Virus record (IMG/VR): IMGVR_UViG_3300027770_000026
Span: 62,001 to 126,000 of that record
Strand: one strand, 5' to 3'
Length of the DNA: 64,000 bases
This document shows, in pieces, positions 6,452-61,929 of the stretch (within the stretch, counting starts at the first letter, position 1; every line of letters starts with the position of its first letter). The notes beneath the pieces are model-generated. The model did no database searches. It had not been told where the DNA came from and saw only the letters and a program-made list of their open reading frames with translations. The position numbers and the translations under genes were made by a program.

Positions 6452-6539
6452 CTTCGTCTCCTTGTGTGTATGTGTGTACGCAGGATCGTTCCTGCAATTG
6501 TATATAGCAGATAGTTGTACTATTCATATAAATATTGGT

Positions 6540-8681
6540 ATGAAAATACATGATATACTCACCGAAGCACAGCGTTTTGACTTCGACAAACACCGTGATA
6601 CTATTCTGCGTTTTGTGCAAAATACGCTGGCCGGCAAGCCCAATAACAGACAATTCAATCCCTTTTATGAACTGATTGTGGGTGGCGGGCAAGTGGGTGC
6701 CGCAAACAAATTGGGTATTGATCCCAAGATGGCAGCAACATGGAAACAGTACTTCCAAAGCAAGCCCTTCCTAGGTGGAGCCGGTGAACCTTGGAGTCAG
6801 GTTAACATTGGTGATCAGTACGCTAAGGCCACAGGCGATGACCGAACCCTGAACTTTTATGTTACTGTAAGCAAAGACAAGGACAATATAATGAAGTTCT
6901 TTAGGAACTATCACAGCCTTGCTAGCTACTTACAGCCCATAAGTCAACAGAACCAAACGCCTATCAAGTTTAAAACACACAGTATATTAGACAGCTTTAT
7001 TGGGCACAACGACAGTTTCAAGGTCTACTACTACGATCCTAAACTACGGAACCAAATAGTTGCTGCTGTTAAGAAATGGCTCAGTGACAGTGGTGTAAGC
7101 ACTGCTGCAAGATCACACGAACACGGCGTGGACGTAAAGAGTAATGGTGGTAGCTTTGGACAGTTACTAAGCAATCACGTATACGACGAGTTCACCAAAC
7201 TGATAAAAACAAACGGCGCTAAGGTTACTCCTGAACAGTACTTTGACTGGCTTAAGAAGAATCTCCCTGTGTTAATAGCACAGGTAAAGCCTAAGGAGCA
7301 AATGACAGAATCCTGGAGCAAGGGCTACAAGAAGAGCATTGATTGCTCAAATCCAAAAGGGTTTGGTATGAGAGCCAGCGAATTTATAACTGAAACACCA
7401 CTTGATCCTAGCACATCAAGTAAAATACTAGCTATGGCAACACGGCAAAAATACCAACTGCTGGGACAAGGCGCTGATGCTACTGTATTTGGTAGCTCTA
7501 CTCACCGTCCAAAAACGGTAGTTAAGATAACGTCGGGCGAACTATACACATCTGCAAAAAAAGCCAGCATAGGTTTCGACCACTTTTACGAGTTTTGCCA
7601 ACAGCACCCCGATAGCCCCTACCTGCCAAAGTTTGAGGAACGGGGATTCTTTGAAGTAAACAGGGAAAAGATTCCTTGGGTGCGTATGGAGCGTTTGAAC
7701 GAACATCCACAGGATTTGCATATCTATGCTGCTGTAGATACGCTAATAGAGGAATCATTTAAAAACGAATTTGCTGATTGGAAACTTGTGAAGTCTCTGC
7801 ATCCAAAATTGACCCTACAACAGCTGGGGATGCTTAAGAAATTTTACTCCATGCTCTCGGAACTAACAGACTACTTTTGGAAAAAAAGATCCAAATTGAA
7901 GTGGGATCTAGGAAAACGTAATATTATGTACCGTAGTAACGTTCCTGTTATCACAGATCCGTTCATGGCTAAAGAGCGAGAAGAATATGAAGAATCCTGG
8001 AGTAAGAGCTACAAGAAGAGCATTGATTGCTCAAATCCAAAAGGGTTTAGTCAACGTGCTCACTGTGCGGGACGCAAAGCACGACGTGCGGGCAAGAAGA
8101 CCAAAAGCGGTAGCGTAAGTGAAGAAGGAGAACTACTTTGGTCGTCAATGAATGAAGCTAGAGCCAATAGTGTGGAAGATTACAAGCCCACTGACCAACA
8201 ATTAGATGACCTAAAAAGCAAGTATCTTCCCAATTGGGAAATGTCAGATCATAAAATGTTACAGGCACGCTACATAGCCAAAGATCATCGACGTGCTGAA
8301 AAATTTATCAGGTTCATAAACCAAGTATCCGAACGTATGGATCACTTTGCCAAAGTAACTCAGGATGTATCCGAAGTCACTGTGGAAACAACTACCTTTG
8401 ATGTAAAAGGTCTGACTATTTTGGACTTCCAGTTGGCCTCGGCCATAGACAAATATGCAGAAAGAAATCAAATTGAACAGGCGAGGTCAGGCGGTAATTT
8501 TGAAATGTATGAAAACTTTGCAGATGGCGAGAAGCCTGGTCGCAAAGGACTAGCCAAACGTTCAGGTGTTGACTGTAAGCAAAGTGTGAGTAAATTGCGT
8601 AGTGTTGCTAAGAATAGCACAGGTGAAAAGCAGCGTATAGCACATTGGTGTGCCAATATGAAATCAGGGAAGAAAAAATAA
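6540..8681 (+). CDS. capsid-targeted polyprotein: HopA1-like domain, Ser/Thr kinase-like domain, pterin-carbinolamine-dehydratase-like domain and Cys/basic peptide modules
   Basis: TATAAATA at 6527-6534 then ATG 6540 (MKIHDILTE); kinase LGQGADATVF/VVKI/DLGKRNIM/TDP; PCD-like LPNW...MDHF...GLTILDFQLA; modules separated by xxE sites. Confidence 0.8.
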   Translation: MKIHDILTEAQRFDFDKHRDTILRFVQNTLAGKPNNRQFNPFYELIVGGGQVGAANKLGIDPKMAATWKQYFQSKPFLGGAGEPWSQVNIGDQYAKATGDDRTLNFYVTVSKDKDNIMKFFRNYHSLASYLQPISQQNQTPIKFKTHSILDSFIGHNDSFKVYYYDPKLRNQIVAAVKKWLSDSGVSTAARSHEHGVDVKSNGGSFGQLLSNHVYDEFTKLIKTNGAKVTPEQYFDWLKKNLPVLIAQVKPKEQMTESWSKGYKKSIDCSNPKGFGMRASEFITETPLDPSTSSKILAMATRQKYQLLGQGADATVFGSSTHRPKTVVKITSGELYTSAKKASIGFDHFYEFCQQHPDSPYLPKFEERGFFEVNREKIPWVRMERLNEHPQDLHIYAAVDTLIEESFKNEFADWKLVKSLHPKLTLQQLGMLKKFYSMLSELTDYFWKKRSKLKWDLGKRNIMYRSNVPVITDPFMAKEREEYEESWSKSYKKSIDCSNPKGFSQRAHCAGRKARRAGKKTKSGSVSEEGELLWSSMNEARANSVEDYKPTDQQLDDLKSKYLPNWEMSDHKMLQARYIAKDHRRAEKFIRFINQVSERMDHFAKVTQDVSEVTVETTTFDVKGLTILDFQLASAIDKYAERNQIEQARSGGNFEMYENFADGEKPGRKGLAKRSGVDCKQSVSKLRSVAKNSTGEKQRIAHWCANMKSGKKK
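7307..7364 (+). repeat. 58-bp direct repeat, copy 1
   Basis: 56/58 identical to 7991-8048; encodes ESWSKxYKKSIDCSNPKGF. Confidence 0.95.
7991..8048 (+). repeat. 58-bp direct repeat, copy 2
   Basis: 56/58 identical to 7307-7364. Confidence 0.95.
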
Positions 8682-8978
8682 GAGGGTTTTTCTGTTGCCA
8701 GGAAAACCCACAAACCCCGGTCTATTCCGCTATTAGGCGGCTAGTGCCATGTCGTAATTGCTATCGTTTGCAGTTACTGTTTTTGCGCTGATTAAGTCAG
8801 TCGCCTCACTGGTAGCCCTTAGTTTATTACTCACCCTGTCAAACCTGGTCGGCCCCAACAACAACACACTTCGTCCTGCAGTACATTCCTAATAGGTGTG
8901 ACACGGTCTGCAAATGTGCTGTTGGTGGAGCCGGGGGGAATCGCACCCCCGTCCAAGATGCCTTTAGTTAAGAGTTTA
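8682..8978 (-). ncRNA. ssrA: circularly permuted two-piece tmRNA
   Basis: Acceptor piece about 8978-8923 ends CGGCTCCACCA; self-pairing intervening segment 8922-8857; coding piece starts GGGGCCG at 8856 (G3.U70 pair); tag GCA(8771)..TAA(8733) = ANDSNYDMALAA; 3' CTG-GCAA-CAG hairpin; TATAAT at 8989-8984. Confidence 0.93.
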
Positions 8979-8996
8979 CTACCATTATACACTTAC

Positions 8997-9746
8997 TTAT
9001 AGTTTTTGATCATATGGTACTTCAATCCATCTACGATTATTCCACGTTGTATTGATAGTATGCACAACACCTTTCCTTATATCATGATAAAACAGTCTTG
9101 CTTGTGTTTGTGATGTGATGCTATCAACTAATGCCCAAAAACTGCTCGACACACAATGTATTTCTGTTGCGTTTCTGATCAGAGTAACCCACTTTAACAA
9201 GTTACCCTGATCTAGATCCAAAGTAACATAGATTATTTTGATATTAGGTAACCCGTTCACAACACGATATTGTTCAATGTCAATTGGAAAGCCATCTAGG
9301 TAATGACTGGATGATTTATGAATCAATACATATGGTTCTCCGGGGGTAACTAACGAACAGTACAGTTCATCCGAATCATCAATATGTTTTGGTAAACGAA
9401 AATTAGTATATCTCAAAGAGAAAGGCAAGTTATAAGAATCATAATATTGCTGAGAGAAATTAATTGGGATATGAATTCCGTTTATAACTGTGTAATTAAG
9501 CATCCTTCTCTTAATTTGAGAAAGTCCGCTATCTGATATGTATTGAGGTTCATAATTTGGGTGTACAGATACTACCTTAATATTAGGCCAATCTTGATAC
9601 AGACAACGAGTAGTTTCATAATAGCAAGGTTGAGTCGGAATATGTAATTCTCGACACCGATCGCCATAGTAATGAGCTATACCATTGTGAATAAAAGTAT
9701 CACCGAGGCTTTGATAACCTATAAAGAACAAACGATCAAATATCAC
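8997..9746 (-). CDS. glycosyltransferase-like protein, paralog 2
   Basis: SLGD..I.NG N-terminal motif and A.EIHCVSSSF C-terminal motif, GT-B (GT9/GT11-like) pattern; paralog of next gene. Confidence 0.6.
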   Translation of the reverse strand: MIFDRLFFIGYQSLGDTFIHNGIAHYYGDRCRELHIPTQPCYYETTRCLYQDWPNIKVVSVHPNYEPQYISDSGLSQIKRRMLNYTVINGIHIPINFSQQYYDSYNLPFSLRYTNFRLPKHIDDSDELYCSLVTPGEPYVLIHKSSSHYLDGFPIDIEQYRVVNGLPNIKIIYVTLDLDQGNLLKWVTLIRNATEIHCVSSSFWALVDSITSQTQARLFYHDIRKGVVHTINTTWNNRRWIEVPYDQKL

Positions 9747-9748
9747 TT

Positions 9749-10507
9749 TTATACTTTATCGTGATAATTTACAATATTCCAGCAACGACGATTCCATTCA
9801 CTGTTAACACGAGTAACAGAGAAAGCACGAATGTCATGAAAGAACAATTTTGCATTAGTTTGATTAAACATGCTATCTACTAATGCCCAAAAACTACTAG
9901 ATACACAATGTATTTCGCTAGCGTTCTTAATCAACTTAACCCAGCGAAGTAAGTTCCTACCATCCAAACTTTCGTCTACATGTATTACTTTAAGTTGTGG
10001 TAATCCGTTTATTTGTCTAAACCAATCAATATTGATAGATATACCATCCGGATGGTGTCCTGTTTTATTGTGTAATAAAATATAAGGCTCACCGCCCGAC
10101 AATTGATCATATAACTCGTCGCTACCATCTACATAGTTTGGTAAACGAAAGTTAGTATAACGCATGGAAAAAGGTATACTATAGTAGTCGTAGTATTGCA
10201 TGTCAAATGCAACTGGTATTAGCTGCCCGCTTAGATGCACCGAATAAACACTGTTTCTTAGAATGCGAGAAAGTTTATTCTCTGCAACATATTGATCTTC
10301 TCCCTGATTATGCGGCATCAGGGGAACTACAATGATATGGGGATGATCCTGATACAAAGTACGAATAGTATCGTAGTATTTAGGAAGACAAGGTATATGC
10401 AATTCGTCTGTCATATCACCGTAGTAATGTGCAACCCCATTCATTATAAACGCATCGCCAAGACTCATTGGTCCCGTAAAAAACAATCGATCAAAAATCT
10501 TAGTCAC
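9749..10507 (-). CDS. glycosyltransferase-like protein, paralog 1
   Basis: Same motifs; collinear with 8997-9746. Confidence 0.6.
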   Translation of the reverse strand: MTKIFDRLFFTGPMSLGDAFIMNGVAHYYGDMTDELHIPCLPKYYDTIRTLYQDHPHIIVVPLMPHNQGEDQYVAENKLSRILRNSVYSVHLSGQLIPVAFDMQYYDYYSIPFSMRYTNFRLPNYVDGSDELYDQLSGGEPYILLHNKTGHHPDGISINIDWFRQINGLPQLKVIHVDESLDGRNLLRWVKLIKNASEIHCVSSSFWALVDSMFNQTNAKLFFHDIRAFSVTRVNSEWNRRCWNIVNYHDKV

Positions 10508-16540: not shown

Positions 16541-16843
16541 TCAGGCTGGTTTAACTTTTACTTCTAATGGATAACCGTTGCGCCGGGCAGCATAAGTGCA
16601 TTCCAACGCTCGCTGTTCTGCCAACTCGTAGTGATAAGTGGCAACAACAGCCTGACCCTGCTCATGGACCAGCATCATGATTTCAAAGCTGCGGGTATTA
16701 TCATATTCAAAAATCTCAGCCAACAATTGAATAACAAAGTCCATACTGGTTACATTGTCATTCATAAAAATCACATTAAACTTTTTGGGTTCTTCTGTTG
16801 TGATGCTATTTTTGATTTTGGGTTTTACTGCAACTTCTGTCAT
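16541..16843 (-). CDS. clpS: ATP-dependent Clp protease adaptor ClpS
   Basis: F.VIF.ND..TSMDFV...IMM.VH..G.AVV...E.AE...GYPL. Confidence 0.92.
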   Translation of the reverse strand: MTEVAVKPKIKNSITTEEPKKFNVIFMNDNVTSMDFVIQLLAEIFEYDNTRSFEIMMLVHEQGQAVVATYHYELAEQRALECTYAARRNGYPLEVKVKPA

Positions 16844-16858
16844 AATGCTATCCTTTTA

Positions 16859-17284
16859 TTAGCTGCGCTTGATTTCGATCTTGCGTGGCTTGAGCTCTTC
16901 TGGTACCTTCTTGACTAATTGTACAGTCAACAGGCCGTTTTTGCAAGTGGCAGATTCAACTTCCACATGCTCACCGAGACGCCAATTCAATTCAAAGTCT
17001 CGATTAGCAATGCCCTTGTACACATAGTCACGTGGCTCTTCATCCGGTACTCGTGAGCCAGTAACGTGCAGCACGTTATTGTCCACAGTAACTTCAATAT
17101 CGTCCGGAGAGAAGCCAGCAACTGCAACAGTGATGCTCCAGGTATTGTCTTCGAGTCGTTCGATATTGTATGGTGGATACTTGGCCTGAGGTAAACCGTT
17201 TCGTCCCATAAGGTCATTGAGATATTCAAACCCTACGGTTAAACGGTTCAGATGGTCGTTGAGATTTGTAGTTGTTACATTCAT
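16859..17284 (-). CDS. small heat shock protein Hsp20 (IbpA-like)
   Basis: YPPYNI, AVAGF, YKGIA.R.F, NGLL motifs. Confidence 0.95.
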   Translation of the reverse strand: MNVTTTNLNDHLNRLTVGFEYLNDLMGRNGLPQAKYPPYNIERLEDNTWSITVAVAGFSPDDIEVTVDNNVLHVTGSRVPDEEPRDYVYKGIANRDFELNWRLGEHVEVESATCKNGLLTVQLVKKVPEELKPRKIEIKRS

Positions 17285-17368
17285 TTTATTGCTCCTTTAA
17301 AAGCGAGTTGTATGGAACCCCAATTGGGCGTTCCTTGTAGTACGCACACCATGTGCCTACTACAATTT
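17285..17368 (-). promoter_or_regulatory. ROSE-like RNA thermometer in the hsp20 leader
   Basis: Two hairpins followed by CTCGCT-TTTAA-AGGAG, pairing U(U/C)GCU with the SD. Confidence 0.65.
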
Positions 17369-17399
17369 TATTTATACACGAACTATCGAGTCAAGTCAA
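17369..17399 (-). promoter_or_regulatory. overlapping late (TATAAATA) and sigma70-like promoter
   Basis: TTGACT-17nt-TATAAA(TA). Confidence 0.6.
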
Positions 17400-17617
17400 G
17401 TTTTAATTTTTTGCTCGCGACGAGTGCGGGCGACAGCTTTGGCTTTAGCACGGCGTGCAACAATGCTGGGCTTGAGGTATTCACGCTTCTTGTCCAGATC
17501 GTCCAAACGTCCACTGTTCTCTACTTTCTTTTTGAACTTGCGCAGCATCTTCTCAAAACTATCGCTGCCGTTATCGTCTACACGTAGACCTTTGATAATT
17601 GGTTCTTTATGTCTCAT
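17396..17617 (-). CDS. rpsU: 30S ribosomal protein bS21
   Basis: FEKMLRKFKKKVENSG.L....KREYLKPS..RR. Confidence 0.88.
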   Translation of the reverse strand: MRHKEPIIKGLRVDDNGSDSFEKMLRKFKKKVENSGRLDDLDKKREYLKPSIVARRAKAKAVARTRREQKIKT

Positions 17618-18861
17618 TATACACCTTTTTTCTTTTGCTTGTGCTTTATCAAAGGCATTTCTTCTGTACCGTTGATATACTCTTTAGTTATCGTTACTGT
17701 GCTTACTGTTTGTAAATTCTTATGGCTAAGACTGTACTGCAACGGTGTTAACTTCTTCTCTAATATACTGCGCAAACTACGTGCGCCTGTTCCCTGCTTG
17801 ATAGCTTTTTGTGCAATACTACTCAGTGCTTCCGGTGCAAACTTTAATTTTACGGGAGAGAACATAGCTTCATACTGTTTGATGATACTGTCTTTTGGTT
17901 CCGTAAGGATCTTGACCATTTGTTCTTCTGTTAGCATTTCAGTGGAAGTGATAACCGGCAAGCGTCCCATTAGTTCTGGGATCATACCATACTTTACCAA
18001 ATCTGTTGCAGCCAATAAGTCCCAATTAATTTTCTTGTTAGATGTTACATTAGCAGAAAATCCAATACCAGTGCTAGTGGACTGTTGCTGCTCTAGATGT
18101 TTCTCTAGTCCAACAAATGCTCCACTACACACAAAGAGGATATTACTAGTGTCCATCTTAACAGTATCACCTAGTCCAAATGGCTTATCTGGATCTGTGG
18201 GTACACTGATCTCGCAGCCTTCGATCATTTTTAGTAGTGCTTGCTGCACACCTTCGCCCGACACATCTCGTTCTACCGTAGCACCACTGTGTGCCCGTGC
18301 GATCTTGTCAATCTCGTCAATAAAGATTATACCTTGTTCAGCTAGTTGTACATTACCATTAGCTGCTTGCAGCAATCTACTTAGGAGTACATCTGCATCG
18401 TCACCTGCATAACCTGCTTGAGTCAGTGCAGTAGCGTCTCCGATTATCATTGGTACACTTAGCAAGTTAGCAATGGCTTTGACCATTAGAGTTTTACCCG
18501 AACCAGTTGGTCCAAGTAACAAGATGTTGCTCTTATCTACTCGTACACTTTCTTTGTCTGCTTTACGGAACAATCGTTTGTAATGATTGTGTACAGCAAC
18601 ACTAAGGACTACCTTAGCTTTATCCTGACCAATTACAATTGTATCAAGATATTCTTTAATCTCAATCGGTGTTATTATTTTAGGTTTAGTTTTAGGTTGG
18701 GGCGTTTTGACTTCGGGTACTTTTTTAACTAATAGGTCTACTATAGACTGTACACATATGTTGCAGATACCCGCTGTTTCACCAACAATCAGACGCTCAA
18801 CTTCTGCCTGAGTTCGCTGACAAAAACTACAGTGCTTTACCGTATTTTTTTTGGATTGCAT
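17617..18861 (-). CDS. clpX: ClpX AAA+ unfoldase
   Basis: C4 zinc finger (CSFC...CNIC), [36 protein letters not shown] loop, GARSLRSI. Confidence 0.96.
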
Positions 18862-26987: not shown

Positions 26988-27030
26988 AGCGTTTCCTAAT
27001 CCTGTGCTGTATTTATAGCCAGATTAGGTT

Positions 27031-31283: not shown

Positions 31284-31354
31284 AAAATTAATCTCCTATA
31301 TATTTGCTTGCTGCTGCAAGCTGTAATGTATTTATACTCTAAAGGAAAAATGGG

Positions 31355-32001: not shown

Positions 32002-32448
32002 TTAGCGTTCGTCAGCTTGTTGCATGAGTTCAACGCTGTCGTCGTCTTGCAGCAGTTCACGAAAGCCTGGATGCATGGGCTTAGGCCAATGTCCGTAGCT
32101 GATCCATTTGAATTCAGAATTTTCCCAGTTCAGCTTTGGTTCAAACTCTTCGAGAACAATTCCCAAGTAATTAAAATATACACTTTCATCTGAGATGTTT
32201 ACTAGCATGGGCATGAGATTGATTTCACCAAAATAGCCTGCTTCTTCACCTACTTCACGAAGCACTGTGGTCTCAGGTGATTCACCTGCTTCCATCTTGC
32301 CACCCCATGTGCTCCAATGATTGGGATAACTTATTTCTCTATTACTACGACGTGCAACACAGAACCTACGTGTCTCGGGGCAGAAGAATATACAGCCTGC
32401 AGCACGACGCTTCGTTTCGTTGGTAGGATGGAACTCATTTATTTTCAT
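32002..32448 (-). CDS. Nudix hydrolase with capsid-tag-like N terminus
   Basis: GGKMEAGESPETTVLREVGEEAG Nudix box; LNWE; MKINEF start. Confidence 0.92.
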   Translation of the reverse strand: MKINEFHPTNETKRRAAGCIFFCPETRRFCVARRSNREISYPNHWSTWGGKMEAGESPETTVLREVGEEAGYFGEINLMPMLVNISDESVYFNYLGIVLEEFEPKLNWENSEFKWISYGHWPKPMHPGFRELLQDDDSVELMQQADER

Positions 32449-33536
32449 TAATAGTTATTCCATACTGATCGAACTTTTTCCAATCCTAAACGAATCTTTT
32501 CTTTGTCGCGATCAGCTTTGGCTTGTGCTTCTGGTGTTGCCGCCTTGGCTCGCTTGCTGGATTCTATATCTCGATTGGCCTTGTCTTCGTATGTGGTCCA
32601 AAATGCATCGCGGAATGCATCGGCGTTGGGGAATGCTTCTAAGTGTCCTTTGCCGTACATGTTGTTTGCAGTAAAGCTACGTGCAAGTCCATGCACGCCT
32701 GCAACCAGGTCACTTATGCGTGAATGCGATGGGTCCATGTGTACCTGTGGATTGACCCCAGGGTGCTGCGTTAGTAGTACGTCTATCTTAGCAGGACCCT
32801 GCTTATCCTGTACCTTATACTCGTGATCAAAAATATCACGGATAAAAGTATCCGGCTCATCTGATAGTGTGTATAAGGTTACATCCTTACGGGTAGTAAA
32901 TGGCACACGCTTGCCGTCTCTTGCTTTGTATTGTACGCCCGCATGTTGTATGCTGAAGCCCAGCAGCTCGCCTAGTACGGAGAACATGTTGCCATGTAGC
33001 AATCCTTTTAGTCCACGCTCGGGTGTGACTCTTGCTTTACCCCAACGCGCATTAGCGTGAGGCATGAGGTCTACTTGTGCGTACATGCTGCCGTTGGTTG
33101 CATCACTGATGTCTAGTATCAAGTGACCACGGAACTGATTTGTACCTTCTTCATTCCTCTTTAGTGTATCTTCGTGTACGTAAGGCGGCTTGGTAGTTTC
33201 GATAAACTCCAACCACTTTGCATACCAATAATTCTGTAGTTGTGTGTATGCTAGTCCTGCGTATAGATCCAACTTGGGAACTTCAATCTGCAGATCCACA
33301 TCACCATATTCTGTATCGGGTTTTTCTTTGAGGTCTTGCCGCCAATGGCTGCTACTACCTGTTGGAGATCCTACACGTATTTCGTGCCAACCTTTATCGT
33401 TGGCGTATGTATTAAAGTCTTGTACAAACTTTTCTACTATTTTAATAATCTTGGGTACTATAGCAGGTGTGAGTCGTGTGCCCTGTGTTACGACACTGTC
33501 CCATCCACCTTCACGTAGTATTTCGCGTATGCGCAT
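32448..33536 (-). CDS. pol-beta-superfamily nucleotidyltransferase-like protein, capsid-tagged
   Basis: MRIREILRE|GG; TGS...YGDVDL...QVDLM. Confidence 0.7.
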   Translation of the reverse strand: MRIREILREGGWDSVVTQGTRLTPAIVPKIIKIVEKFVQDFNTYANDKGWHEIRVGSPTGSSSHWRQDLKEKPDTEYGDVDLQIEVPKLDLYAGLAYTQLQNYWYAKWLEFIETTKPPYVHEDTLKRNEEGTNQFRGHLILDISDATNGSMYAQVDLMPHANARWGKARVTPERGLKGLLHGNMFSVLGELLGFSIQHAGVQYKARDGKRVPFTTRKDVTLYTLSDEPDTFIRDIFDHEYKVQDKQGPAKIDVLLTQHPGVNPQVHMDPSHSRISDLVAGVHGLARSFTANNMYGKGHLEAFPNADAFRDAFWTTYEDKANRDIESSKRAKAATPEAQAKADRDKEKIRLGLEKVRSVWNNY

Positions 33537-44168: not shown

Positions 44169-45100
44169 GACTCATCCAGTTCCCATGGACCGTAGTTTTT
44201 AGTCTTAACCATCCATTTAAGTGCAGCAGTTCTGTCGTATTTGCGATACTGCCCTGGGTCGTTGGCATTTACTTTGCCCAATTCGTAGTACTGTTCCTTG
44301 CGCATCACAATGTTTCTGCCATTACTGGTATCAAGTACAACATCGCCTACTTCATTCCAAGCATGCTCATGGCGCACACCTTCGATGCCACCCTGTCCGG
44401 TAACCATAGCGTGTACTAGCACTAGCCCCGGTATCTCATCGCGTATTACGTTCTTACCCGCAGCCTTAAAGCAATCGCCTAGTTCTTTGGCCTCACGTAG
44501 TTTCTTCTTACGCATTAGCAGTGCAGGATATCCATCACGGTTCACTTTGCTACCAAACTTAGCGGCTTCAATGGAGGTTTGATTTAATCCCACATCCTGT
44601 GTAACATTCTGCGGAGTAATACGTCCCACACCTTCGTTAACCATGCGCTTAAACAATGGTCCACGCTTTAAAGCTCGTGTACGCTCCAGGTACATACCCT
44701 GGTTCAGTGCTTCAATTATCTTGGGAGTTAGGTCACGATTACGTATGTCGTCCCTAAAGAACAGGTGTGTCTCTATAGGTATATTGCCTTCTAGCTCTTG
44801 CACAATCTGCATGCGATTACGACCTTCGTGGCTCACTACTTGTGCGGGCTCGGAATAGTCGCTGGAATCAAACCAAGCTACGGGTATTTGTATAATAAGG
44901 AAAGGTGCGCCAATTGCAGCACCGTCCTCGATAGCTTTTTCTACGTGTGTGTTTCTGTTGTCACGCGGCAAAAATGCAGCAAGGTCTAGAAATACAGATG
45001 GCTTCATTAGCACACGAAGACCGCGGTAGTCTACTTCTTGGTTATAGGGCGTTGCGCCCAGACCCTTACGGTTGTCAATTGTTACTTCGCTGATCTTCAT
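44165..45100 (-). CDS. capsid-tagged polyprotein: ParB/Srx-like domain, short module, transglutaminase/papain-like domain
   Basis: MKISEV; HEGRNR; VNE|GVGRI; LRE|...GDCF...HAW.E...VLD. Confidence 0.6.
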   Translation of the reverse strand: MKISEVTIDNRKGLGATPYNQEVDYRGLRVLMKPSVFLDLAAFLPRDNRNTHVEKAIEDGAAIGAPFLIIQIPVAWFDSSDYSEPAQVVSHEGRNRMQIVQELEGNIPIETHLFFRDDIRNRDLTPKIIEALNQGMYLERTRALKRGPLFKRMVNEGVGRITPQNVTQDVGLNQTSIEAAKFGSKVNRDGYPALLMRKKKLREAKELGDCFKAAGKNVIRDEIPGLVLVHAMVTGQGGIEGVRHEHAWNEVGDVVLDTSNGRNIVMRKEQYYELGKVNANDPGQYRKYDRTAALKWMVKTKNYGPWELDES

Positions 45101-45720
45101 TACAATTCCTCGGCAAACCAGGGATCAATTACTACCAGTGTGCCGTCTCTGCGCCGCATGACGTTTTCTGTGTGCAAGTCCCAGCCTAAATTATTTAGCA
45201 ATCCGGTGTTGTATAACAGTTGCAGTAGAACATACAGCACATGATACTTTTCCCAAGCACGTGGCTTAATACGTCTGATACTGTTTATTATTTCAGGATT
45301 GTCATACGTAGCCCATTCTGCGGAATCCTGCAGCTTGTGGTGTACCTGCGCCCACTTTATGTCCTTGCGAGCGTATTCACTCAGCTGCCATACTACAGCT
45401 TCTTGTGTGCTGCCCTTGCGCACGGGATATAGTCGTTCCATTGCGATACGGTGATAGTGTATGCCATTGTGTATAAATGGTTCATGATGTTTGCCGCTGG
45501 GTAGTGTATGGAATCTTGGTAGATTTTCAATATCACTGTTACGTTGGCAAAAGTGATAGAACTTCTTAAAGGTGCGTACAGCATGGCTTAGTTTACCTTC
45601 GGGCATGAGTATTTTAATCACATGCTCGCTGCTACTGGTCCACACGCTAGCGTCTGCGCCATGCCCAAGCTTTTTATAGCCCTGACGATGCAGATCATGC
45701 TCTAGATCTTCTAATATCAT
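45100..45720 (-). CDS. Ser/Thr protein kinase-like protein
   Basis: LGHGADASVW, VIKI, MERL, DLHTENVM, VIDP. Confidence 0.85.
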   Translation of the reverse strand: MILEDLEHDLHRQGYKKLGHGADASVWTSSSEHVIKILMPEGKLSHAVRTFKKFYHFCQRNSDIENLPRFHTLPSGKHHEPFIHNGIHYHRIAMERLYPVRKGSTQEAVVWQLSEYARKDIKWAQVHHKLQDSAEWATYDNPEIINSIRRIKPRAWEKYHVLYVLLQLLYNTGLLNNLGWDLHTENVMRRRDGTLVVIDPWFAEEL

Positions 45721-57231: not shown

Positions 57232-57247
57232 AAGAGTATTTATACCC

Positions 57248-61311: not shown

Positions 61312-61929
61312 ATGCGGGCAACAGAATTCATAACGGAATCACTTGATAAACCCTACCCATGGCGACAGGCAAGAGCCAAATACGCTATGGCAAAATATGT
61401 GTTCCGTGCCAACAGTATACTCAAACGCTATCAGATATCATTTGATGTACGAGGAGACAATCGTGTAGAAGTTGGTTTTGGTCGTTACACTCTGACGCGC
61501 GGTTTAGACCTGGGAAAGACCAAAGATAGTTATCAGGAGGCACAGAGAATCTTTGCTACAGTTGGTGCTGTCATAATGGATTTCCTCAAAAATAATCCCA
61601 GCGTGAACACTATTCATTTCAGTGCCCCTGCAGACAAAGGCGAGACTGAAAAAACATCCAGCAGAATACGACTGTATGGTGCACTAGCCAAACGCCTGCA
61701 ACAACAGTTGGCGTGGCCTAATATAACTCGAGAAGTAGAACCCAATCCTTATACCAATGATCCCGTAGTATATTGGGATATCAGTAAGGATGCCAAAAAG
61801 GTAGAGCCCACACAAGATAGAGATTATGCTGCAGCCCAAGCAGCCAAAAATCCTAACCCTATTTTGGATAAAATATATCCAATGAGAAAAGCTCAAGCAG
61901 TAGACCGAATACTGAGTAAAGGTCTATAA
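61312..61929 (+). CDS. capsid-tagged protein (possible GNAT-like fold)
   Basis: TAAATA 61302-61307 then MRATEFITE; IFATV...F.A...SR.RLY. Confidence 0.7.
   Translation: MRATEFITESLDKPYPWRQARAKYAMAKYVFRANSILKRYQISFDVRGDNRVEVGFGRYTLTRGLDLGKTKDSYQEAQRIFATVGAVIMDFLKNNPSVNTIHFSAPADKGETEKTSSRIRLYGALAKRLQQQLAWPNITREVEPNPYTNDPVVYWDISKDAKKVEPTQDRDYAAAQAAKNPNPILDKIYPMRKAQAVDRILSKGL

Follow-up and report, generated by a model that had tools for sequence, protein, structure and literature searches.

A mosaic and probably capsid-delivered polyprotein combining a HopA1/LanY-type fold, a truncated kinase and a PCD-like domain in an uncultured freshwater jumbo phage

Why does a single phage gene join a lyase-like domain to a protein kinase? 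This question is raised by positions 6540-8681 (+ strand) of a 64,000-nucleotide stretch of the IMG/VR virus record IMGVR_UViG_3300027770_000026. The stretch, called the window here, spans bases 62001-126000 of the viral contig Ga0209086_10000003 (265,892 bp), which comes from a freshwater metagenome. The DnaB helicase encoded there shares 47% identity with its counterpart in the Pseudomonas jumbo phage PA5oct and 46% with that of the Agrobacterium phage Atu_ph07. The gene is one uninterrupted open reading frame (ORF) of 713 amino acids (aa), with the ATG at 6540 and the stop codon at 8679-8681. A first-pass annotation had proposed that the product is a capsid-tagged polyprotein whose kinase and lyase could act as a pair and irreversibly modify host proteins or the neighbouring peptides. 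Our results agree with the tagged and modular character of the protein and speak against a dedicated pair. We consider it probable that the gene, which belongs to an uncultured freshwater jumbo phage, encodes a mosaic effector polyprotein that is packaged in the capsid and processed by a protease, and that its shuffled parts act independently.

The borders between the modules carry the first line of evidence. It had been noticed that the modules are separated by hydrophobic-x-E (h-x-E) sites, and we found this motif at every module border of the protein (ILTE9, QMTE257, FITE285, EYEE485, SMNE539, and EMYE658). In the relatives, the same Glu stands before two spacer modules, here named A and B. 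Before module A (xWSxxYKKS), E was present in 49/50 contexts and position P3 was L/I/V/M in 46/50, while before module B (NFADG) E was present in 92/92 unique contexts and P3 was V/L/I/M in 73/92. The positions P2 and P4-P6 were variable, and this pattern extended across unrelated upstream domains. Because E is near-universal and P3 is mostly aliphatic before modules A and B in the relatives, the border motif goes beyond chance. In addition, E9 is conserved in at least 90% of cases, no matter whether domain 1, the domain that follows it, is N-terminal or internal.

Two of these borders close a short tag. Tag 1, MKIHDILTE (aa 1-9; 6540..6566), is a putative capsid-targeting propeptide with a putative cut after E9. 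Tag 2, the internal MRASEFITE (aa 277-285; 7368..7394), appears from the N-termini of relatives to be the kinase cassette's own N-terminal tag. Both resemble the start of the T4 internal proteins IPII and IPIII (MKTYQEFIAE), and T4 IPI starts with MKTFKEF; this fits the capsid tag that the annotation had named. The T4 sequence, ~10 residues at the N-terminus, guides its proteins into the scaffolding core before gp21 cleaves it off (PMC9958956). Tag 2 is identical or nearly identical to the N-termini of the relatives P0038, P0047, P0188, and P0191 and of many kinase polyproteins, and a tag-like N-terminal pattern was found in 62/119 kinase polyproteins, many of them beginning with MRA[SK]EF[IT]xE. 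In the wider set of relatives, the proteins start with MRASEFITE, MRAREFITE, MKINEILAE or MKVYELVLE. Furthermore, large related contigs carry their domain 1 genes within tandem arrays, the longest of ~15 genes, whose members have only the N-terminal tag in common. The comparative evidence supports, but does not prove, capsid targeting and Glu-specific processing. It should also be noted that AAAGGG stands 7-12 nt 5' of the internal ATG at 7368; therefore, internal initiation is possible, and the kinase-PCD part with its own tag might also be made as a separate translation product of 437 aa.

Some further observations concern these tags. The array tags include MKTFKQFLLE, MKVIELLTE, MRVSEILTE, and MNFKEFY..., and the arrays were likened to the T4 internal-protein loci. 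In L052:489-14248 (contig Ga0209229_10000001, 329,993 bp) and also in L051 and L055, there are ~6-15 small tandem genes with a domain 1 gene inside each array, and the array in L051 additionally holds a kinase gene. Two other ORFs of the window have tag-like starts. The one at 61312-61929 (+) encodes 205 aa starting with MRATEFITE, which is nearly tag 2; it lies on the + strand amid - strand genes and contains neither module A nor module B. The other one, at 32448-33536 (-), encodes 362 aa starting with MRIREILRE, and it had no Pfam match.

The spacers themselves are shuffled. A Ser/Cys/Lys-rich peptide, SWSK[GS]YKKSIDCSNPKGF, occurs twice in the protein, at aa 258-276 and aa 486-528. The first occurrence is a truncated copy of module A, SWSKGYKKSIDCSNPKGFG (aa 258-276; 7311..7367), which breaks off after NPKGF and runs directly into MRASEFITE. 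The second is a full copy (aa 486-528), basic (pI 9.9) and with two Cys, which together with the linker EGELLWSSMNE (aa 529-539) covers 7995..8156. At the DNA level, direct repeats of 61 nt (7307-7367 vs 7991-8051, 95% identical) flank the kinase cassette. In related strains from two other runs, domain 1 is followed by the full module A with SQRAHCAGRK (Logan). Module B, NFADG...HWCANMKSGKKK (aa 659-713; 8514..8678; pI 10.4), ends the protein; many of the listed proteins, which range from 94 to 1116 aa, have it at 60-87% identity, mostly at the C-terminus. Its two cysteines covary perfectly in the relatives, including P0008, P0003, P0125, and P0153 (44 C/C, 20 non-C/non-C, and 0 mixed), which points to a disulfide or another paired contact between them within the small basic peptide. 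An HMMER search of 1.84 billion representatives found the modules of the protein in 3,853 clusters at E ≤ 1e-3 and in many combinations; the clusters were defined at 50% identity, and the count is a lower bound. The cargo between the shared spacers of relatives includes HExxH peptidase-like, HAD+LysM+GH19, Pol-beta nucleotidyltransferase (NTase), ParB-like, GNAT, and PF18760 domains. Meanwhile, the modules are absent from all of the 50,697 deposited phage genomes, in which neither the DNA of the gene nor its protein found a match (megablast, tblastn).

The largest cargo is domain 1 (aa 10-257; 6567..7310), which we regard as a putative phospho-Ser/Thr lyase-like domain from its AlphaFold2 (AF2) model and Foldseek. 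The model was built from an alignment of 34 homologues and had a pLDDT of 91.6 and a pTM of 0.86, with disorder only at residues 1-9. In the Protein Data Bank (PDB), ranks 1-3 of Foldseek were chains of LxmY (9dk2_B, 9dk1_B, and 9dk3_B; E 6e-5 to 5e-4, prob 1.0), the lyase subunit of the lexapeptide dehydratase LxmKY, and rank 4 was HopA1 (4rsx, E 1.3e-3). Chains of the phosphothreonine lyases SpvC and VirA recurred after HopA1 as weak matches (E 0.05-0.12, prob 0.28-0.69). The TM-scores were modest (0.33-0.40). In addition, the ESM Atlas leads independently indicated clusters of PF17914, PF03536, and RamC_N. The structural comparison that had been suggested as a check thus came out in favor of the annotation for LanY and HopA1, and the model supports the assignment of domain 1 to the HopA1/LanY/OspF-type fold, with a more tentative likeness to OspF/SpvC.

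Membership of domain 1 in HopA1/LanY is not supported at the level of hidden Markov models (HMMs). Domain 1 had no match to PF17914 at E ≤ 10, nor had any of its 34 homologues at E ≤ 1, and no Pfam match to PF03536 was found for domain 1 or the homologues. The profile of the 34 sequences gave only chance matches against PDB sequences, and hhalign of the alignment against SpvC (pSLT) found no similarity (probability 0.4%). Domain 1 had no relative among 185,579 genomes of bacteria and archaea. The BFVD viral structures gave nothing significant in Foldseek, and no viral counterpart of the fold was seen in BFVD, the 50,697 phage genomes or a literature search. Within the data searched, the domain 1 family is phage-only.

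The sequence motifs quoted in the first-pass annotation are all present in domain 1, namely NFYVTV (aa 105-110), PIKFK (aa 141-145), HNDSFKVYY (aa 156-164), and GGSFGQ (aa 203-208). Across the family, Y43, W85, Y107, K145, N157, D158, S159, K161, R191, D198, S205, and G207 are invariant, and T146, H147, and H193 are near-invariant. Mutagenesis of the lyase CaoY showed that K219 (the base) is essential, R187 is important for activity, R229 is dispensable, and Y236 is also catalytic (PMC9486802). By motif order and spacing, rather than by a residue-level alignment, CaoY K219 would correspond to the invariant K145, Y236 to Y163 (Y/F), R187 to N105, and R229 to H/D156 (H156 in the protein itself).

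Domain 1 is followed by a truncated protein kinase, probably of Kinase-PolyVal type (aa 286-485; 7395..7994); alignment, AF2 and Foldseek indicate the kinase fold. The family was gathered by scans of loci and by a search seeded with the relative P0059. When aligned, the homologues, which stem from 28 IMG/VR loci, share an invariant GxG loop, beta3 Lys, ME[RQ]L hinge, DLHxxN, and DP[WF]. The protein itself has GQGADATVF, VVK, WDLGKRN, and ITDPF, and it retains the catalytic residues K329, D456, N461, and D473 and the G309/G311 loop. The AF2 model (pLDDT 81.7) had 98 PDB matches at E ≤ 1e-3, and among the matches listed 50/50 belonged to the kinase superfamily (PknB, VRK2, CLK, and RIO2), which agrees with the kinase named in the annotation. 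The domain stops 12 residues past DPF, at an h-x-E border, and the C-terminal kinase subdomain is lost. Such a design without the C-lobe is a hallmark of polyvalent-protein kinases (PMC5512222). Furthermore, 12/25 aligned homologues match PF18762 (Kinase-PolyVal; best E 5.4e-5), the kinase of the protein itself being without a match. The partner domains of the kinase in polyproteins include GNAT (PF00583), ParB (PF02195), PF18760, and lysozyme-type domains. From these comparisons, the kinase appears to belong with the Kinase-PolyVal group and not with the APH-like LanK group. The window holds a second, stand-alone kinase paralogue of 206 aa at 45100-45720 (-), with E 2e-67 for the family HMM and a weak E of 0.0013 for PF18762; it fits the family profile better than the polyprotein's own kinase.

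The third cargo is a degenerate domain related to pterin-4a-carbinolamine dehydratase (PCD/DCoH-like; aa 540-658; 8157..8513). It matched PF01329 (Pterin_4a) at E 2.7e-16, with 59.9 bits vs a gathering cutoff of 26, and the PDB entry 2ebb at E 1.2e-8; Pterin_4a was the only match when the whole protein and its pieces were searched against Pfam, NCBIfam, and PHROGs. Aligned to 2ebb and 2v6u, the domain reads HFA for HHP and TF for TH, just as had been described. Among the relatives, DHF replaces HHP in 32/32, and the TH histidine survives in 2/32. Since the phage subfamily as a whole has other residues in place of the catalytic histidines of HHP and TH, a DCoH-like binding role is more plausible than dehydratase catalysis.

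How could these parts work together? We infer that the protein is probably cut up inside the capsid and injected into the host. The T4-like N-terminal tag would bring the polyprotein into the assembling prohead, where the prohead protease would cut after the Glu of [LIVM]-x-E at all module borders. This would set free three cargo domains of ~14-28 kDa, namely the HopA1/LanY-fold lyase-like domain, the truncated Kinase-PolyVal-type kinase, and the non-catalytic PCD/DCoH-like domain, as well as three small basic peptides. The freed parts may remain with the DNA and enter the host alongside it. As for the origin of the gene, recombination within the conserved module A may have placed a complete tag-kinase cassette in frame after a domain 1 gene. 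The cargo domains would then be interchangeable cassettes acting separately on host targets, and not an obligate kinase-lyase machine.

The alternative closest to the earlier proposal is a dedicated dehydratase made up of the kinase and the HopA1-like domain, comparable to LanK/LanY. It would work in two steps, phosphorylation of Ser/Thr and then elimination of the phosphate, and its substrates would be host proteins or the neighbouring Ser/Cys peptides. In favor of this, one polypeptide contains both folds, domain 1 is structurally closest to the lyase subunit of LxmKY, and the putative base lysine K145 is invariant. However, the pairing is not conserved. Domain 1 is usually a stand-alone protein of ~255-280 aa; a kinase lies within 6 kb of it in 0/11 other IMG/VR loci and near it (6-8 kb) in 2/58 metagenome loci, in both cases as a separate gene ~6 kb off. 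From the other side, domain 1 is present in 0/28 kinase loci and 0/119 kinase polyproteins. Its siblings bear other partners instead: in P0153, a 97%-identical domain 1 is followed by the full module A, a Pol-beta NTase, the LLWSSMNE linker also known from our protein, and module B, with no kinase, and in P0155 an 83%-identical domain 1 is fused to a ParB-like domain. In addition, the kinase lacks the C-lobe, which is the part that binds the leader peptide in LanK (PMC12141560), the residue equivalent to R187, which CaoY requires for activity (PMC9486802), appears to be Asn105, and cleavage at the borders would part the two enzymes. No precursor-like gene was found. The idea that the Ser/Cys peptides are lanthipeptide precursors was dropped, because they are general spacers in thousands of proteins with neither enzyme. 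In run X3, which is another sample, an 838-nt Logan contig on 6512-7965 seemingly leads from tag 1 through diverged pieces of the kinase into the beginning of domain 1, so that the two domains would stand in the opposite order; this possible second kinase-domain 1 arrangement, if real, would also speak for a dedicated pair. Taken together, we regard a dedicated dehydratase as very unlikely, and the pairing seems best explained as the product of cassette capture. A more trivial explanation of the pairing is an assembly chimera formed at the 61-nt repeat. It is true that a second IMG/VR contig (L002) ends at the repeat and that the exact protein was found on one contig only. Nevertheless, in the source run the three unique segments had Logan unitig depths of 20.2, 19.5, and 16.5, and the shared 41-nt repeat core had 40.5. 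Because the unique segments are of equal depth and the core is doubled, the fusion does not stem from misassembly; the core adjoins the kinase segment at either end, which leaves one sensible linear path. We thus consider a chimera extremely improbable.

Even if the gene arose by cassette capture and is delivered with the capsid, domain 1 might be inactive as a lyase and serve as a binding or decoy module, or perform other chemistry on a retained HopA1/LanY fold. The annotation had cautioned that several expected Arg residues differ and that domain 1 may only bind its substrate. The first part of this caution agrees with the N105 and H/D156 found by motif order and spacing, and the second part stays as a rival, to which the absence of PF17914, PF03536, and SpvC similarity at the HMM level and the TM-scores of just 0.33-0.40 also point. 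But the conserved polar residues are dense and active-site-like (K145-T-H147, N157-D158-S159, K161, R191, H193, and D198), and the CaoY R229Q mutant keeps most of its activity (PMC9486802). We give an inactive domain 1 a serious chance, a little short of even. The bolder proposal, that domain 1 is the founding member of a family of phospho-Ser/Thr lyases that is confined to phages, delivered with the capsid and directed at phosphoproteins of the injected host, where the co-delivered kinase of this protein could write sites and then have them destroyed, is speculative and seems to us unlikely. Several points weigh against the mosaic, capsid-delivered polyprotein as a whole. The Foldseek TM-scores were low for both modelled domains, domain 1 and the kinase (0.3-0.45), neither of which reaches a Pfam model, and the kinase has Gly at the near-invariant His of its family (DLGKRN vs DLHxxN). 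The X3 arrangement, if real, would be a second kinase-domain 1 architecture and a hint of selection for co-delivery, which counts modestly against independent action. Jackhmmer searches with T4 gp21, 22, 23, 24, 67, and 68 found no prohead protease, capsid or scaffold gene in the window or in the related loci, the gene sits amid small early-type or metabolic genes, and the conservation of the border Glu could partly be intrinsic to the modules rather than mark a cleavage site. The last three points would fit an ordinary cytoplasmic multidomain protein that is neither packaged nor processed, its h-x-E borders and N-terminal likeness being coincidental or module-intrinsic. Yet the constraint at P3 reaches into unrelated upstream domains, identical short tags head otherwise unrelated genes in the arrays, the internal tag copy stands exactly at the cassette border, and the first nine residues are disordered in the model. 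An unpackaged protein is therefore, in our judgment, fairly unlikely, and we prefer the packaged and processed polyprotein.

The genomic setting of the gene can be described briefly. Only ORF 6540-8681 reads on the + strand in what is otherwise a long series of - strand genes. Its neighbours are small genes without a known role and nucleotide or proteostasis genes, and those that could be named are dCMP deaminase, MazG, SNase, metallophosphatase, ClpS, HSP20, S21, and a ClpX-like protein. ClpS, the HSP20-type chaperone, ribosomal protein S21, and the ClpX-like AAA+ protein are encoded consecutively at ~16541-18861 (-), according to Pfam and PHROG matches. Immediately 3' of the gene are two adjoining paralogous ORFs, 8997-9746 and 9749-10507 (-), of 249 and 252 aa, both of which begin with ..FDRLFF.G..SLGD.FI.NG.AHYYGD. 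A consensus scan found a terminator-like hairpin with a T-run 3' of the stop codon (8754..8787, +). On the 5' side, a TATAAATA box (6527..6534, +) stands 5 nt before the ATG and fits the T4 late-promoter consensus. The TATAAATA-N5-ATG spacing occurs at two sites, 6527-6534 (+) and 57237-57244 (-), neither with a Shine-Dalgarno sequence; given the T4 late-promoter geometry, it may yield a leaderless late mRNA. Two more copies, at 27010-27017 and 31329-31336, precede same-strand genes by 22 and 45 nt, and one of these genes is tail-spike-like. Altogether, 4/5 copies lie just 5' of same-strand ORFs. The window has 5 copies observed vs 3.3 expected, with no enrichment, so the late promoter is offered here only as a remark.

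A few proteins are known to be injected by phages together with their DNA, for example T4 IPI and Alt, which block host defences. The present locus suggests a much larger injected-protein system, in which at least 3,853 clusters would share a single short capsid tag, a single cleavage rule, and a pair of basic spacers for loading and exchanging dozens of enzyme cassettes. Two elements have apparently not been described, namely the phage HopA1/LanY-fold family and the very large tag-and-spacer cassette system, which is known from metagenomes only. If domain 1 is an active lyase, it would remove phosphate irreversibly from host phosphoproteins and leave dehydroalanine or dehydrobutyrine, and its possible targets would be Ser/Thr kinases of defence or stress, either at their activation loops or through their substrates. 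No OspF-like 'phospho-eraser' would have been seen before in a virus that attacks bacteria, and irreversible dephosphorylation would be extended from bacterial pathogens of eukaryotes to the conflict between phage and bacterium. In addition, the tags and spacers could be of practical use, as ready-made natural parts with which foreign proteins are loaded into large capsids. For annotation, the locus teaches caution, and two enzymes that share a shuffled polyprotein are by themselves no proof of a pathway.

Compared with known systems, the PCD-like domain is a clear sequence member of the pterin-4a-carbinolamine dehydratase/DCoH family (PF01329), whereas the phage subfamily is without the catalytic HHP/TH histidines. 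Domain 1 is comparable to the class V lanthipeptide dehydratases LanK/LanY (LxmKY and CaoKY), HopA1, and OspF/SpvC, since LxmY, HopA1, and, more tentatively, SpvC are its best structural matches; its motifs (xFK, xND..KVY, and SFG) follow the LanY order and spacing, and its putative base lysine does not vary. However, the position of Arg187 looks like Asn here, and there is no APH-type LanK partner, precursor peptide or conserved kinase pairing. In giant phages of the phiKZ/SPN3US type, many head-internal proteins are cut after Glu by the prohead protease and ejected into the host. Their cleavage motif is (A/S/G)-x-E, and these proteins are not known to be related in sequence to the present one.

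The T4 internal proteins IPI, IPII, IPIII, and Alt, processed by gp21 (PMC9958956), share with the polyprotein the pattern of a ~10-residue tag and the expected cleavage at Glu in aliphatic-x-E. They are also alike in the varied cargo behind a conserved tag, the tandem arrays, and the expected co-injection with DNA. In contrast, they have no spacer modules A and B and no polyprotein with several cargoes. The polyvalent proteins with Kinase-PolyVal PF18762 (PMC5512222) are similar in carrying many effector domains per polypeptide, in the presumed delivery with the DNA, and in a kinase without the C-lobe, and they share the partner types (Pol-beta NTase, ParB, GNAT, ART, peptidases, and lysozymes) and the cassette-like recombination. 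HopA1/OspF-like and PCD-like domains have 0 mentions in the survey of these proteins (PMC5512222). Furthermore, polyvalent proteins are delivered by MuF or other polyvalent scaffolds, whereas the present protein apparently relies on a T4-type tag and processing after Glu.

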